Source: Wallemia ichthyophaga EXF-994 (Eukaryota; Fungi; Basidiomycota). From it: 28,214 bases of DNA. The stretch is from the NCBI RefSeq assembly GCF_000400465.1, contig NW_008806305.1:1-28214 (forward strand). The letters run 5' to 3'. A model generated the notes under the pieces. That model was not told where the DNA came from. It saw nothing but the letters and a program-made list of their open reading frames with translations, and searched no databases. The translations under genes were made by a program, and so were the position numbers. Position 1 is the stretch's first letter; every line of letters starts with the position of its first letter. Below are positions 515 through 28,160 of the stretch, in pieces.

Positions 515-3500
515 CTAGAAAAGTTTCTTTAGGGCCTTTGGGATTTTTGCTCGCTTAGTAAGATAGTACAAAGCGAAGGTCATAATAAAGTTGAAGAGCA
601 CAAAGAGAGTAAATATACCAAAGTAACCCCATGGCCAGCCTTCGCCGGTAAAGACGTGCTTTTGATTCAGAAAGGCACTAGAGTCTGACATAGGACAATA
701 TTGGCAGTTTGTCGTGGCGGTCGGATCAACGAGGTATCCACCAGACGACCGAACAAATGATTCCGCATACGAACCGCATGTTCCACTACCGGGAGGTGGC
801 TGGAAAGTGGCGAGTTCCCTCTCTGAGCAGTTAACACTGACGTTAGAGGCTGTAGCGCCGATAACTCCGTCTAGATAGTATGTGAATGGGTTGAGGTAGT
901 CTGTTTATTTGTTAGAAACATCTTGTCGACAAAAGTTCTACCCACAAACTGTGTACTTCCAGATAACCGGTTGTTGAGCGTAGTTGAGGAAAATACCGTT
1001 AATAAAAAAGAGCAAAATGATGATAAAAGGCATCAAGTTCATGACGACCTTTGGATTTGGGCTCATTGAGCACATCCATGCTGCCATCCAGGTTGAGTAT
1101 ACGAATGCGGCAACGGTAAGAACAAAAGTCAACCCAGCAGGCGATCCCAGTCGGAACCCTCCATCTGCAGTATAAGCAAATGCAGCTGGGAAGTACGAAA
1201 TTATGAAGTAAATTACTGAGTTCATAAAAGTGTACGGCAGCTCAGACATTAAATAACTCATTATGAATGCCTGCCAGCTGTAGATTTTTGACGGTGCCTC
1301 TCTGCTTACGAAGAGCTGGTGACTGATGAAATATTTCGGAGCTGCTGAGACAATCGTGAAAGGAGGCAAAAGCAACAACAAGAAAGCTGCAAACGTCCGC
1401 TCACGAAGATTCGTTGTAGTGGTACCAATTTTGAAGAAGAGGAAACCGTTCATGATGGCGACTGTAACAGTGATAAAGAGCTGACTGTATGTGTAAGATG
1501 AGTCCCTCCAATAGTTGCGACTCATTCGCCCGATGAGTAGCTTTGTTTGAACTGAAAATGGCTGCGAGTACGTTCTTGTCATTGCTTTTGACATCTCCCT
1601 TGGTTTTTGTGATTTCTCAGCGTTGATTTTGTCAACCTCTTGACGAATTTTATATGCCTCCTCTGAATCTTTGAAAGCTTGAGGGAAATCAAGCGGTCTT
1701 CCGTGAGCATCCTTGCTGTAGGCTACCATTTCAATAGCGTATTCAGCGACATTCTCATGTTCTTGGCAAGGCCTAGCACCAATTCTTTTGAAGTATTCGA
1801 CGATGGTGTTACCGTTGTTACCGACTGGACCTTGATAAACCACCCTACCACCAGGTGCGAGTAGGAGAAGACGATCAAAAAACTCAGTGAAGAGTAAACT
1901 CGATGGTTGGTGAATAGTACATAGGATAGCTTGACCGGCATCTGCGAGCTTATTCATAAAACGTCCAATGGAGTAGGCGGATTGAGAGTCTAGACCAGAC
2001 GTAGGTTCATCGAGGAAGAGCAAGACGTCTGGCTTTGCAGCCAGCTCAACAGCAATTGTTACTCTCTTGCGCTGTTCTACACCTAATCCAGCACCTGGTG
2101 AACCGATAATGGCATCCTCAAGGTCATCGAGTTCGAGTAGGTGGATAATTTGATCAACATATGCCAAAACTTCTTCGCGAGGAGTTTCGCGTGGCTGTCT
2201 GAGAATAGCTGAAAACTGAATTGATTCTCTGACAGTAGCAAATGCGTCGTGTAAGTCACCTTGTTGAACATAGCCGGTACCTCTTTGGAATGAGTTAAGC
2301 TCAAGTGGTTTCCCATCAATCAGCATATCTCCGGTAACAACACCCATAGACATTCTCTGCGAGAGCGTGTTGAGAAGAGTCGTTTTACCAGCACCGGAAG
2401 CACCCATAAGAGCAGTAATTGTGCCAGGTTTGATGTAGCCAGTGACGCGATCAAGCAGTAGCTTCTCTCCATCGGGAGTCTGGACGGTGTAAGATACGTC
2501 CTTGAAAGTAAAATCCGCCACAGATGGTTTTATGGCTCCAACGTCAACCTCCTTCTCGACTTGGCCCTTTTCGTTGACTTGCTGGCCGGGTCCGCTCTCA
2601 ATATCACCTACAAGATTACTCTCAGCCTGTTTGGCCTTCTCTGCGCCCTTTTTGGTCTTGGCAAAGACGGTTACACCACCAGAAGCAGCAGTGCTGCTGA
2701 GATATTCAGATGCCAATGCAGTGAAGAGTAAGTATCCAACCAAGAAACAGAATTGATAACCCAAGAACGGCCATAAGTGTGTGTAACCGTAGTTTGCCTC
2801 AACGTAATCTTCACCGCGAACCGTGAGGCTGCCAGGTCTTCCACCTTGGACTGCACAGGTTTGATAGGGAACATCCGCTCCAGGCACACCTCTCGGAACG
2901 ATATCTGGTGTATCGCATGATATGTCAATACCCCTGAACTGACTGACCATCAAAGCTTGGAAAGTGTAGGGAAGCACGTTAACCCAGGTGATCTAATAAA
3001 GGTTTCAGTTAGGCTGCATTATAGAAATGCGACACACTTACCCATTTATACCACCAGCCAATGTCATAGCGGGGAATGGTGTATCCAGCCAAGGTAAAGG
3101 CAATATTGAGCAGGCAAACTGAATATCTGCACGACTTTAGTAAGACTTCATAAAGCAAATAGCTCGCAACCAACCTTATAGCCGATCCAAAATTACTGCA
3201 AAAGGCTGCTATAGCCTTGAAAAGCTGGTTGAATGTGATGGCATTGACAGTGATAAACAAGAAGTAGGTCCAAAATTTGCCCGCATCTGGGTCCAGAGAG
3301 CCAAGAAAGTAAGTGATGACCGAAAACACGCAAATACCGGCAAGAATTACGGGAGCGTCGACCATGAACGCTGCTATTGTGACTGCACTTGGTCGATAAA
3401 GAGCAAAGTCCGCGTGTTTGCTGAGGGTGTTGTCAATATCTGCACTATTGGCAGTTCGATAAATCTTACCTGATTATTTGACGTCCAGCGCAAGCAGCAA

Positions 3501-20466: not shown

Positions 20467-21666
20467 CTAATCGTAAAGATACTTTGGCGGATCATTGCGC
20501 TTGCTTAATTCGAAATCATTCGGAGACACATAGAAACCCTCTTTTTCTACTCTTCCACTCCTACTCTTCCCAATCGGCGACACTATATCGTGAATTGACA
20601 TCGCAACGGCCTTTGCCTCCTCGTAGCTCTTGGTGCAATTGCAGCTCTCCTGTCTCTCCTTGCCTATACCAGCATACTTTCTCTCATCATTCTCGCAGAG
20701 GCGCTCCATTTTGACATGATCTTCATAACGTGGTAACAGAACTGAGTCAAACGATAGCAAACAGTGCGGTATTCTGACCGGGAGTGCTATCCTTGCCCTG
20801 TATACTAACGGATTGGAATGAGTGCTGTGCCAAATTTCAAGAACGAGCTTATGCGTCGATCTGATTGCGCAGTCTGTATAATCGCAATGACTGCCTCTTA
20901 TTACTGTGTCGTCTGGCAACCTAGCCAGGTATCTCGCCTTAATTGGATAAGTTTGGCTCAGACGGTCTGGCAAGATGTTCGAATTGAGTGTGTTAGTGCC
21001 TTGATTGAGTATAGCGACTGTTTTTGGAGGCAGCGTCTCCTTGTAATGCTGATCATTGCGAGAAAAGAGCATCGTAGCCTGCTCTACGCTTAGCCGTATA
21101 CCATGCACCCTCAAATCGGCTACAGCTTGTGGGAGGTGCATCTCCATTTCGATGACGCAACTCACAGTAAGATGCCTTGTATTGAAAGCCACCTCCACAG
21201 GCCCCAGGCCTTCTATCGATGACTGCACGCTTTCACCGAAGGGAATATATCCCCAGCCGATCGGATGAGCAGCGAAAAGGAGGTCGAGTTTGCGAGAGAG
21301 CGGGAGCGCTATCCATTCATTGAATATCACCGTCGCTTTAAGATATTGGAAGCAAGTGCCGTGCGAGTGCCTCTCATAGACGAATGTATTTGGAATGTAG
21401 AAGAAGAAGTCGAGCTCGTGCACGCCGGCGTCGAGCGTCTCTTCTCCGCAGATATTGAACCTCTCCGATAGCAACTCGTGCTTCTCCTTGCCTCTGCTCA
21501 GGTGCACTTCCTCGACGCACTTGAGATCGACGTCTATCGACTTGATGAATCTCTTGGTCGGGAGGTTGAGCGTCGCTATCCCAGCCAGCTCCTTCTCTGG
21601 CTCGTCTGGGCTGTGCGTAATGACATTGTGGGATCTCGGTAAATCTATGTGCAGTGTTGCTGGCAT
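20467..21666 (-). CDS. Alpha-arrestin-like (ART-type) ubiquitin-ligase adaptor, 399 aa, intronless
   Basis: Arrestin-N-like beta pattern (LAGIATLNLP..RFIKSIDVDL...TLDAGVHELDFFFYIP...YERHSHG...YLKATV), basidiomycete-type C-domain (RLPDD..IR.S...IRSTHKLVLEI...PVRIP.C), and PY motifs LPRY (20725-20736) and PPKY (20479-20490). Confidence 0.78.
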   Translation of the reverse strand: MPATLHIDLPRSHNVITHSPDEPEKELAGIATLNLPTKRFIKSIDVDLKCVEEVHLSRGKEKHELLSERFNICGEETLDAGVHELDFFFYIPNTFVYERHSHGTCFQYLKATVIFNEWIALPLSRKLDLLFAAHPIGWGYIPFGESVQSSIEGLGPVEVAFNTRHLTVSCVIEMEMHLPQAVADLRVHGIRLSVEQATMLFSRNDQHYKETLPPKTVAILNQGTNTLNSNILPDRLSQTYPIKARYLARLPDDTVIRGSHCDYTDCAIRSTHKLVLEIWHSTHSNPLVYRARIALPVRIPHCLLSFDSVLLPRYEDHVKMERLCENDERKYAGIGKERQESCNCTKSYEEAKAVAMSIHDIVSPIGKSRSGRVEKEGFYVSPNDFELSKRNDPPKYLYD

Positions 21667-21961: not shown

Positions 21962-22515
21962 TTAGTACTTGTTGTCGTCGTCGTAATTGTCTTGTTTCAT
22001 GCTATCGTGCTTCTTGTCATTGTTACTGTGCTTCTTCTCATCGTGCTTAGCGTCGTGATTTTTGTCGTCATGTTTGATATCGCCATACATCTTGTCGTCG
22101 TGCTTGAAATGGTGTTTATCATCGTAATTCTTGTCATCTTGCATGATAACGTGCTTCATGTTCTCGTTCTTGTCATCCGTCTTGTCCGACTTCCAGTTGA
22201 ACATCCAATTCCAGAAACCCTTCCTATCGTCATCCTTCTTATCGTTCTGAACAATGTATAAGCTGGTGTCACTGAGAGCATCACACTACCCACTTTTTCA
22301 TCCCACTTCTTGTCAGCATCCTTGTCATTATTCTTCTCATCTACCTTGTGATAGTCGTAATCGACGCCCTTCTTGTGATCGCCCTTGTATTCCTTGTAGT
22401 CAACGTCTTTCTCATCTCCGCGACGGGCGATGTTGTCTGGTTGTGCGGCTGCTGCTGATGCGATGGTGCCAGTGAATGCAAGAACGGCGAGAGCTTTGGC
22501 GGTGTTGAAGTACAT
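21962..22515 (-). CDS. Small secreted Asp/Lys/His-rich repeat protein (DDK/KHDDK repeats), 168 aa, 2 exons
   Basis: Exons 22294-22515 and 21962-22246; a 47-nt GTGGGT..CAG intron joins ...KKWDEK|NDKKDDDRKGFWNWMFNW... in frame. Signal peptide MYFNTAKALAVLAFTGTIASA and dibasic RR (Kex2-type) at residues 31-32. Confidence 0.88.
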
Positions 22516-22559
22516 TTTTGTCTTTTGGGATGTAGAAAAGCAAGAGGGATATAGCGCTT

Positions 22560-22565
22560 CTTATA
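22560..22565 (-). promoter_or_regulatory. Putative TATA box (TATAAG) of the secreted D/K/H protein gene
   Basis: TTTATAAG on the minus strand about 45 nt upstream of the ATG at 22515. Confidence 0.4.
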
Positions 22566-23218
22566 AAGCCAGCTGGGCTGATGATTCTTGGTGCTACAGT
22601 CACATCTCGTCATTCTGCCAAGTTAATGAGGCTGAATCTGCACGTGCTAGGGTAGAAATGTGTAGAATTCTATGCTAGTCTACTGCATTTTCCAGCTGCT
22701 CTCTTCTGCTGCCGCTATCCTGAGGGCAAAGATCCACATCGACTGGCTGAACGCAAATATCAATTGTGGTTGCGAAAAATGTTTTATTACGCTGGGTGAT
22801 ATGATTAAATGTATTAGTTACGCTATCATGATTGTTAAAGATGTTGGGTAGACTGAAAAAAGCATCGAGTAGCTTCTTTGAAATATTGACAAACATTGCC
22901 AGCCAGTTTATCCGTGGTATAATTTATTAAAGAGGCATTCATCGATAGTACAGTTAACACGAATATTTGGTATGAGGCGGTGAATCCACGCTCAGCACCA
23001 AACATGAGCAAAATTGGAACCAGGAGGGAAGATCTAAAACAAAAACAGCCGTCTTTAGTTTATTTGGCTACTCATTGATAATTGGGTTGCGTTCTTCGCT
23101 CCACCAGTCAGACACTATGTCTTACTTTTGATACCGCTCTTTAGGTGGGTGGGCATACCTATCATTATTAATACTTTGACTGGCATGAATTACATGCATT
23201 TATAATATGAAGGCCAAA

Positions 23219-23566: not shown

Positions 23567-24782
23567 TCATTGAAAAAGTTTCGCAACCCGAATCTGTAAC
23601 CCTAAACTCTGAATCATCTGAATACTCATACTCCGAAGAAGTGTCAAAAACCCAAAATATGAAACAGAAAATTCCGAAAAACTTAATATGTGATGCTTTG
23701 AGCCAAACCTATCGAATGCTTCTTCAGATATACCCTCCACAATAATTGTCGCCTCTTCTGCCTTTGGCATTGAGTCGTCATTAATACCGCGATTGAATTC
23801 GTCGCTGGATCTAGCTGAGCTAGTGTACTCGACAAATAAATTCCTCAAATTGCTCAATTTGCAGATATTCTCAGGATTGATGAAATCATGATGTTTGCCG
23901 AGCAAGTCCTTAGTCATCAGCTGATTATTATCAATACATAGTTTTTCCAAACACTCAAGAGAAACACCATTTCAGTTGCTCAGCTCCTTATAATAAACCC
24001 GAAGGTGGGTCAGTAAGAGAATAAAGTCTATGAGAGTTCATAGCTCCAAAGATATACCACATAATGTATACAATGATGGGATTGGTTTGTTTGTTGATGT
24101 TTGCTGCATATTCAGATATACTACCAGAAATCTCGGGTATCACCATGTGCCTACCATGTGCCTGCCTCTGTGATGGCCAGAAGCATGGGGTAAAAGCCAA
24201 GAAATAAAGAAAATGCATGGTATCCCTAAATAGTGAAAGATTAAAATCTAAAACCTGATTTCAACGCTTCTAGGCCAGCCAGTCCTCGATTTCCATCTCG
24301 CCAGAGCCGAGTGAAATCAGACACATACTGGCGTCTTTGATATGTATGGTGAACGTTCGAATGCTGAGGTTATCTCTATTTGGAGTATCTTCTGGGTTCT
24401 GTGGGTTGTGTCCTATGCATGCAATCTCCACCAAGTCTCTTCGCGCGAGAGAATCAGTTAGGACGGTGAAGTATTTCGAGGAGGTGACTGTGCGGTTATT
24501 CCAAAACTTATTGATATTTATGATGGCTAGATCTTCTATGCTGTGATTGAGGTAGGCGCGGACATGTGTGGACGTGTGCCCGGTATCGTCGTCGCTTTCT
24601 TGGAGGAAGAGTGCATTCTTGTGTCCCTCATTTTTAACACCGTCGTCTATGCGCATTATGAACTCGTCTAGATACCTACGCGGTGCCCTGTACATCACGT
24701 AAATTGGAAATCTGAGTGCGTAAGCGGCGAGCTATTCGTAATCACACAAAACTCACTTCTTGGCCGCCATATGAGGAAACAT
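23567..24782 (-). pseudogene. Fragmented hypothetical gene with an LRR/RNI-like C-terminal part; probable pseudogene
   Basis: A 45-nt GTGAGT..CAG intron joins MFPHMAAKK|FPIYVMYRAPRR to the 142-aa ORF, and a GTATGT donor lies near 24328. The downstream ORF LEKLCIDNN...ICKLSNLRNLFVE is preceded in frame by TGA (23972-23974). An 11-bp tandem duplication sits at 24142-24163. The exact model is unresolved. Confidence 0.4.
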
Positions 24783-28066: not shown

Positions 28067-28160
28067 TGCATTAACCCGGAATTGAACCGGGGGCCGATCG
28101 ACTCGGATCAACGAGATAGTTGATTGGCAACGATCGAGGTTACCACTACCCCATTAATGC
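28067..28160 (-). tRNA. tRNA-Gly(GCC): tRNA-Gly (GCC) with a 23-nt intron (28102-28124)
   Basis: Acceptor stem GCATTAA/TTAATGC plus discriminator A, D-loop TAGTGGTA, anticodon stem GATCG/CGATC, loop TTGCCA^T with the intron after position 37, T-arm CCCGG-TTCAATT-CCGGG. Confidence 0.95.

Follow-up and report, generated by a model that had tools for sequence, protein, structure and literature searches.

Which task could a protein made largely of aspartate, lysine and histidine perform outside the cells of a fungus that lives in brine? The question is raised by a gene of Wallemia ichthyophaga EXF-994, an obligately halophilic basidiomycete that grows from ~10% NaCl to saturation (PMC3849046). 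The window analyzed here is the whole stretch of 28,214 nucleotides at positions 1 to 28,214 of contig NW_008806305.1 (assembly GCF_000400465.1), and the gene, located at 21962..22515 on the minus strand (two exons and one intron, stop codon included), encodes a 168-aa Asp/Lys-rich protein with a putative signal peptide. A first-pass annotation, which was based on the letters of the window alone, treated this protein as a secreted polyampholyte and connected it with a xerophilic or halophilic lifestyle, an expectation that the host, being an obligate halophile, bears out. The comparisons described below indicate that the gene does not stand alone but belongs to a previously undescribed, fast-evolving multigene family, seen so far only in Wallemia, that shares a promoter motif and appears to be constrained at the level of composition.

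A multigene family of Wallemia

Searches for homologs returned relatives from Wallemia only and no characterized family. A HMMER pass over 1.84 billion representative proteins yielded three matches, all of them through the N-terminal 80 residues, and a profile of the matched N-termini added five more in a search of 5.8 billion proteins; every named match from both searches belongs to Wallemia. Pfam contained no match to the window protein even at E <= 1 and no family matching two of its longer relatives, and no match was obtained either in a PDB sequence search or in an Rfam search over the whole window. A homolog search that started from the 253-aa product of L001 (described below) came back empty and missed even the exon-1 ORF of L001 itself, probably owing to filtering for biased composition.

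Loci of the family were counted at least four times in W. ichthyophaga (one of them probably a pseudogene), at least twice in W. hederae and once in an AT-rich fungus that is common in metagenomes. Besides the window gene, W. ichthyophaga possesses a tel2-side paralog (L007, L008 and L009), with three exons and a product of 338 aa, which lies near tel2 and RPL27A; this copy is a true paralog because one and the same strain has it on one contig and a window-type gene on another. A third copy (P0023) is found on the small contigs L015 and L016. The fourth, J056_002420/E3P92_02854 (L014 4001-4405, on SPNX01000027; J056_002420 is its name in the reference strain), is probably a pseudogene, given that its ATG is replaced by ATT, that it contains an in-frame stop and that it is truncated after the start of exon 2. 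This copy has been annotated as a hypothetical protein of 118-127 aa that starts from an upstream ATG, and it is positioned head-to-head with the gene of a 325-aa multi-domain hydrophobin (1963-3488).

The two copies of W. hederae (P0002 and P0022) are partial and located at contig ends; they carry true, near-identical tandem units of 14 and 21 aa, each ending in KK and followed by GV(E/D)Y, and the window copy also has the corresponding HKK|GVDY. In the AT-rich metagenomic relative (L011-L013), the signal peptide is followed by ARRGDEYK, an intron and then DDKKDDKK blocks that alternate with E/K-rich helical segments. One further sequence, L001 (Logan SRR25393945, 934 bp, from a single sequencing run), resembles different copies in different parts. 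Its nt 1-174, which cover the 5' untranslated region (UTR), the signal peptide and the pro-segment, are 99% identical to the window, nt 230-461, intron included, are ~88% identical by eye to the tel2-side paralog (75% when the full match of 466 nt is counted), and the sequence of the 3' half and of the 3' UTR is unique. Accordingly, L001 is either a mosaic paralog or a structural allele, and its mosaic makeup suggests gene conversion or recombination at the boundary of the N-terminal cassette.

The family gene is absent from the syntenic site of a relative in which the counterpart of the 399-aa gene adjoining the window gene is 83% identical at the DNA level. The sequence concerned (L010; Logan SRR25399871) contains a 408-aa gene with this identity to the 399-aa neighbor, but its flanks, with DAO and MFS genes, are entirely different; it suggests that a close relative of W. 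ichthyophaga in which the locus is rearranged has yet to be sampled. Within the window itself, ~800 bp upstream of the gene, the segment 23237-23329 (minus strand) gives a weak tblastn match to the D/K/H-rich region (48% over 29 aa, E = 3e-4), in a frame that contains stops; it may be a decayed family fragment or a chance low-complexity match.

Gene structure and promoter

Exon 1 of the window gene (22515..22294; minus strand, as for all elements of the gene given below) comprises 74 codons for residues 1-74, which include the signal peptide, the segment QPDNIARR and a first polyampholyte arm. It is followed by a phase-0 intron of 47 nt (22293..22247; GTGGGT...TTCAG), the mean intron length in W. 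ichthyophaga being 61 bp (PMC3849046), and by exon 2 (22246..21962), whose 94 codons plus TAA encode residues 75-168, namely a Trp island, a His-rich second polyampholyte arm and the terminal ...DDDNKY. The 168-aa product begins MYFNTAKALAVLAFTGTIASAAAAQPDNIARR. Read-through of the intron shifts the frame into an Arg/Thr-rich tail and then a stop, so that splicing is required and the Asp/Lys-rich C-terminal half exists only in the spliced product. Upstream of the gene are a TATA box, TTTATAAGAA (22558..22567), ~52 nt 5' of the ATG, and a family-specific motif, TGACGAGATGTGA (22600..22612), ~97 nt 5' of the ATG, which is a putative cis-regulatory element.

That W. ichthyophaga has a genuine, spliced gene at this locus is shown by the conserved position and phase of the canonical 47-nt intron, the fixed distances of the TATA box and the upstream motif from the ATG, the in-frame 21-bp indel between strains (see below) and the models of depositors. 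An identical 168-aa model is present in the depositor annotations of some other W. ichthyophaga strain genomes, and the annotations of other strains contain models of 185 or 192 aa that begin at an upstream ATG; the disagreement concerns the start (window 22516-22614, minus strand; gene starts at L004 5865 and L005 5815). The upstream ATG inside TGACGAGATGTGA was rejected as a start codon: it lies 5' of the conserved TATA box, and its frame relative to the main open reading frame (ORF) varies between paralogs, being in frame in the tel2-side paralog and out of frame in the window gene, for which reason it is probably noncoding. Antisense to exon 2, the plus strand contains an ORF of 89 codons (21992..22261) for a very hydrophobic, Val/Ile/Leu-rich sequence. 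It was likewise rejected as a gene, being the mirror image of GAY/AAR codons and devoid of a start context, an intron or promoter support.

Conserved cassette and variable mature chain

Comparison of the family members indicates that a common promoter, a signal-peptide cassette and a physicochemical profile are kept while the mature sequence turns over. The 13-nt motif TGACRAGRTGTGA is found exactly once, at the same distance of ~97 nt 5' of the ATG, at each of the four W. ichthyophaga loci; it was not found elsewhere in the window, where it thus has a single occurrence, or elsewhere in the other fetched loci. W. hederae and all paralogs retain the TATA box at about -52, in the form TTTATAAGAAGC or TATTTAAGAAGC. 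The N-terminus, including the signal peptide, is the most conserved part of the family and is present in all members, with M1, F3, N4, A6, K7, A13, F14, T15, G16, I18, A19 and S20 invariant across four of them, and the mature chain characteristically starts with GD(E/D)K. Phase-0 introns of 45-49 nt directly precede a YW motif in L001 and L007; in L011, too, the intron is in phase 0, though the exon 1 before it is shorter. A C-terminal (D/K)(K/N)Y is common to the window gene (...DDDNKY), L001 (DDKKY) and L007 (DDKNY). ORFs of 168-338 aa with correct splice sites have been kept in several species. The window gene itself combines all the defining features of the family: TGACRAGRTGTGA together with the TATA box, the N-terminal pattern M(Y/H)FN.AKA..(V/F).AFTG.IAS, the GD(E/D)K start, a phase-0 intron followed by (Y/N)W(K/M)S, and a Cys-free, charge-balanced, D/K-rich body with low kappa (a measure of charge mixing).

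The mature regions, by comparison, share ~30-47% identity at best, which is low-complexity similarity, or are not alignable. Nevertheless, throughout the family the fraction of charged residues is 0.41-0.71, the net charge per residue stays within +/-0.07, kappa is 0.01-0.10 and Cys is absent, and in six of seven members kappa is below that of every one of at least 300 shuffles. This suggests that composition is under constraint despite sequence divergence. The turnover of the mature sequence proceeds by point changes, in-frame gain and loss of repeats, exon duplication and recombination between copies. In five strains, the window gene differs by five single nucleotide polymorphisms (SNPs), one synonymous and four non-synonymous (all D/E/H/N exchanges), and one strain carries an in-frame 21-bp duplication, KKHSNND. 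Other secreted gene families are known in which the pre-pro region is conserved and the mature part hypervariable (PMC4558851, PMC5577615).

Three features noted in the first-pass annotation do not extend to the family as a whole. The RR site is kept in four relatives and replaced by SRGG or SYRG in two W. ichthyophaga paralogs. The island of three Trp residues is unique to the window copy; at the corresponding position, just after the intron, relatives have EYWKSDK or SYWMSNK, that is, one (E/S)YW(K/M)S(D/N)K motif, and the island looks like an expansion of this single YW motif. Enrichment in His, as well as in Asn, is restricted to the W. ichthyophaga copies, and because the copies of W. hederae and of the metagenomic relative contain only 0-3% His, His-based metal binding cannot be the core function of the family.

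Composition and predicted state of the mature chain

The precursor consists of a putative signal peptide, a short pro-segment that ends in RR, and a chain of 136 aa. The putative signal peptide spans residues ~1-24 (MYFNTAKALAVLAFTGTIASAAAA; 22444..22515), with the cleavage point judged by eye. One Lys, a 19-residue uncharged stretch (8-26) and the small residues AAAA|Q make up what, again by eye, are classic n-, h- and c-regions, the first 30 residues include only one basic residue, and this N-terminus is conserved in the family; the protein thus looks secreted, as had been claimed. The pro-segment QPDNIARR (22420..22443) has a dibasic end, R31-R32, at which Kex2 might cut; next comes GDEKD, which is conserved in the family.

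Among the 136 residues that follow R31-R32 are 35 D (26%), 31 K, 13 N, 11 H (8%), 8 Y and 4 W; C, P and L are absent. The counts given by the first-pass annotation proved to be exact, and the RR and the aromatic patch GFWNWMFNW that it describes are present, the latter at residues 84-92 (22219..22193). With a charged-residue fraction of 0.54, a net charge per residue of -0.066, a grand average of hydropathy (GRAVY) of -2.41 and an isoelectric point of 5.6, the mature chain is nearly neutral. Its kappa is 0.05, compared with 0.16 +/- 0.04 in shuffles, none of which (0/500) reached so low a value. The chain is a well-mixed polyampholyte, and its description as zwitterionic is supported. A charged fraction above 0.35, a net charge near 0 and low kappa place it in the strong polyampholyte class of intrinsically disordered proteins as defined by Das and Pappu, a class whose composition predicts an expanded coil (PMC7503639). 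Consistently, the chain falls far on the disordered side of the boundary in the charge-hydropathy plot, and single-sequence AlphaFold2 modeling gave a mean predicted local distance difference test (pLDDT) score of 53 and a predicted template modeling (pTM) score of 0.13, with a helix at 80-89, overlapping the Trp island, as the sole secondary structure. The mature chain is predicted to be disordered, in agreement with the original proposal.

The DDK/KHDDK repeats that had also been proposed stand as over-represented motifs but not as an array: KHDDK occurs twice against a shuffle expectation of 0.04 (p = 0.0008), KH 7 times against 2.5 (p = 0.002) and DDK 5 times against 2.0 (p = 0.03), and Tandem Repeats Finder detected in the gene a single weak array (12-nt x 2.1). 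With no true tandem array at the DNA level, these "repeats" are best described as recurring short motifs. Pairs of KK or RK are located at residues 48, 69, 77, 82, 145 and 152; KK is not enriched (5 observed, 7.0 expected from composition). No N-x-S/T sequon is present in the mature chain, which has only 3 Ser and 1 Thr. The C-terminus, ...QDNYDDDNKY, lacks a hydrophobic tail, and the protein is therefore no glycosylphosphatidylinositol (GPI)-anchored protein; with no Cys, it is neither a hydrophobin nor a Cys-rich effector, and all three exclusions of the first-pass annotation hold. The only interfacially favorable stretch after the signal peptide is the Trp island, with a summed Wimley-White free energy of -7.2 kcal/mol (interfacial scale).

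Possible functions

The first-pass annotation proposed hydration, the binding of salt crystals or metals, or condensate or amyloid formation via the Trp patch, all of which are conjectural. Of the explanations considered here, the most plausible, if somewhat short of probable, is that the protein serves outside the cell or in the wall as a hydrated polymer that withstands salt and carries an aromatic anchor, and that it acts through bulk polymer properties and has no folded active site. The protein would be exported and would do its work outside the cell, which makes the gene a clear and testable candidate for haloadaptation there. At 1.7-5 M NaCl, charge-charge forces would be screened, and the chain, nearly devoid of hydrophobic residues, would not salt out easily and would remain swollen and retain water. 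Polyampholyte chains swell with salt as electrostatic attraction is screened (PMC7503639; bioRxiv 10.64898/2026.06.01.729380), and the ion-specific salting-out that occurs at very high salt affects mainly hydrophobic surface (bioRxiv 10.1101/2022.02.16.480648). A chain that swells with salt and exposes almost no hydrophobic surface should, for these reasons, remain soluble and hydrated where ordinary proteins fail. The Trp/Phe patch, aided by scattered Tyr residues, would tether the chain to wall polysaccharide, the membrane or the hydrophobin layer, an idea that derives from the Trp island being the only interfacially favorable segment, and within the thick cell wall the two charged arms would then make up a hydrated brush or matrix. 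His and Asp may additionally buffer pH or divalent cations. In a more far-reaching version, which we consider rather doubtful, the family would be a class of salt-insensitive polymers of Wallemia's own: a conserved promoter-plus-signal cassette would drive interchangeable, exported D/K-rich bodies, on which selection acts for nothing but charge balance and mixing, and which the aromatic patch tethers to the thick wall, where they hold water and ions. Such a class would then be the extracellular counterpart of the intracellular hydrophilins and part of the means by which the most halophilic fungus known survives in saturated brine.

Apparent constraint on composition speaks for the hydrated polymer; several observations weigh against it, and some of these also count in favor of drift. 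Halophilic proteins are classically acidic and poor in Lys, whereas this chain is rich in Lys, and neither the Trp island nor the His enrichment is family-wide. The first-pass interpretation is further weakened by the presence of the family in the AT-rich metagenomic relative. The expectation that expression would respond to NaCl was not borne out, in that the 639 genes with different expression at 10% and 30% NaCl (Zajc et al., 2013) include no member of the family, although the gene may be absent from the 2013 annotation. SNP density in the window gene equals the local background, with four non-synonymous changes to one synonymous, and one family copy is pseudogenized, both of which fit weak constraint. 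These last observations, from the missing salinity response to the pseudogene, would equally be expected if the gene were a drifting orphan, that is, if a conserved promoter and signal cassette expressed a nearly neutral low-complexity sequence subject to birth-and-death turnover, with a composition that stems from slippage-prone, GAY/AAR-rich DNA and not from selection. The 21-bp indel, the breakage of assemblies at contig ends by several copies, the composition of L001 from two copies and the absence of the family from the syntenic site in the 83%-identical relative point in the same direction. Drift is nonetheless a rather unlikely explanation, considering that long ORFs with correct splice sites persist in several species, that net charge is held within narrow limits although the proportions of D, E and K vary, that kappa lies below all shuffles in six of seven members and that the promoter motif and the signal peptide are strongly conserved. 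It is highly improbable that the protein is not secreted at all, with an N-terminus for mitochondrial or other targeting, or that the opposite strand codes. ARR|G, with Arg at -2 before G33, would fit R-2 processing, and the 89-aa plus-strand ORF does exist, but a single basic residue in the first 30 followed by a 19-residue uncharged core is typical of a signal peptide rather than an amphipathic presequence, and the TATA box, the upstream motif and the intron all fit the minus strand.

Two other explanations accept export but assign the role to peptides or to ligands, and both seem distinctly unlikely. In one, the protein is a Kex2-processed precursor (KEP): Golgi Kex2 would cut at RR32 and at the KK/RK pairs to release small charged peptides with signaling or antimicrobial activity, and the intact polymer would have no role. 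The location of RR32 immediately before the conserved GDEKD, the six KK/RK sites, and the W. hederae units that end in KK before GV(E/D)Y, echoed by HKK|GVDY in the window copy, are compatible with such processing, and a survey of 250 fungal secretomes, which accepted KR, RR and KK sites, ranks W. ichthyophaga and W. sebi among the KEP-richest species, with 6 KEPs each (PMC6339444). However, the pieces between the dibasic sites of the window protein are not repeats of one peptide, KK is no more frequent than composition predicts and is used by Kex2 less than KR or RR (PMC6339444), RR is missing in two paralogs, and sequences of the family were not found in the examined supplements of that survey. 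In the other, the protein binds or buffers cations: Asp clusters and the 11 His would chelate Zn, Cu or Ni, or bind Ca or Mg, and serve metal acquisition or detoxification in Mg-rich bitterns. Its abundance of Asp and His, the strong over-representation of KH and KHD (p = 0.002) and the computed charge, which swings from about +25 at pH 4 to -8 at pH 7, would suit this role, and by composition the mature chain presumably resembles His-rich KS-type dehydrins and the His-rich Ca-binding protein of the sarcoplasmic reticulum. Against cation binding, the scarcity of His outside W. ichthyophaga implies that chelation by His is not a conserved property, each Asp is matched by a Lys that competes with cations, and no metal-binding family was matched.

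Relation to known protein families

The closest parallels to the proposed hydrated polymer are hydrophilins, late embryogenesis abundant (LEA) proteins, dehydrins (including the His-rich KS type) and the secreted LEA-like proteins of desiccation-tolerant animals. These proteins, too, are small, extremely hydrophilic and disordered, are rich in K, D, E and H, come from organisms that live at low water activity and are thought to act by bulk effects such as hydration, shielding and buffering of ions or metals. The window protein, however, has neither a sequence relationship to dehydrins and LEA proteins nor a K-segment or Pfam match, it carries a putative signal peptide whereas most of those proteins are cytosolic, and its Asp content far exceeds that of Glu. 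Hydrophilins are operationally defined by a Gly content above 6% and a hydrophilicity index above 1; the GRAVY of the mature chain is on the hydrophilic side of this definition but Gly, at 5/136 (3.7%), is too rare. On paper, then, the protein can be described as an exported hydrophilin- or dehydrin-like protein, yet it is not a member of those families.

With KEPs, the protein appears to share a signal peptide, and it shares a pro-segment with a dibasic end and a low-complexity or repeated sequence with KK pairs (PMC6339444). A KEP is expected to contain at least three near-identical motifs that are separated by KR, RR or KK and cover at least 15% of the protein (PMC6339444). Such an arrangement is lacking in the window copy, which has no repeated unit between the sites, whose sites are mostly KK rather than KR or RR, and whose RR is unconserved, and looks to be present in the partial W. 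hederae copies P0002 and P0022. Mussel myticalins, MgCRP-I and the peptides of frog skin and cone snails (PMC5577615, PMC4558851) likewise have a signal or pro region that is far more conserved than the mature part, and as in the Wallemia family there are several paralogs per genome and recombination at the cassette boundary (seen here in L001); in Wallemia, the promoter is conserved too. The mature peptides of the myticalin type are short, cationic or Cys-rich, and bioactive, whereas the mature part in Wallemia is a long, neutral, Cys-free polyampholyte.

The mollusc protein Pif80, with its DDRK repeats, the cement proteins of barnacles and mussels and the His-rich Ca-binding protein are secreted and mix acidic, basic, His and Tyr residues, a likeness that is limited to composition; these are animal proteins that act at mineral or surface interfaces, and we know of no mineral or adhesive context for Wallemia. 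Among wall proteins of the same fungus, the hydrophobins enriched in acidic residues are small, too, and are secreted, and their composition has been discussed as haloadaptation (PMC3849046). Hydrophobins differ in having eight conserved Cys and a folded amphipathic core, and the window protein shows no PF01185 match. GPI-anchored wall proteins are set apart by a hydrophobic C-terminal signal and a Ser/Thr-rich stalk, neither of which is found here.

Genomic neighborhood

The 399-aa protein encoded next to the family gene (20467-21666, minus strand) is identical or nearly identical to hypothetical proteins of W. ichthyophaga strains, and the contig itself is present in many strains. This protein and the product of 24270-24698 (minus strand; ~142-151 aa) belong to no Pfam family and are apparently lineage-restricted hypothetical proteins. 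Other genes of the window encode a PDR-type ABC transporter, a RasGEF protein, a HAM1-like protein and a Na+/H+ exchanger, which have no obvious link to the family gene.

A dispersed repeat occupies 30-145 of the window; over these 116 nt it shares 97% identity with the end of contig SPNX01000077 (L009 10657-10772), where the repeat copy cuts into exon 2 of the tel2-side paralog. The terminal 27-30 nt of L007 and L008 have an exact match in 403-435. The element, which could be a transposon or a collapsed repeat, seems to be a site at which contigs break. At 28067-28160 (minus strand), ARAGORN reported a 94-nt tRNA-like match with an undetermined four-base anticodon, and Rfam gave no tRNA there at gathering score; the match could be spurious or else represent an intron-containing tRNA close to where the contig ends.

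Implications

Were the gene a drifting orphan, the family would exemplify ordinary birth and death of low-complexity genes. If the hydrated-polymer reading is correct, it would instead offer a clean example from nature in which charge patterning, and not sequence, is the target of selection, and a protein that remains soluble and hydrated in 5 M NaCl would be attractive as a salt-tolerant protein stabilizer or antifouling coating. Work on fungal life at saturated salt has so far dealt with compatible solutes, ion transporters, wall thickening and acidic hydrophobins, to which a genus-specific family of exported, charge-balanced disordered proteins would add a directly testable extracellular protein component.

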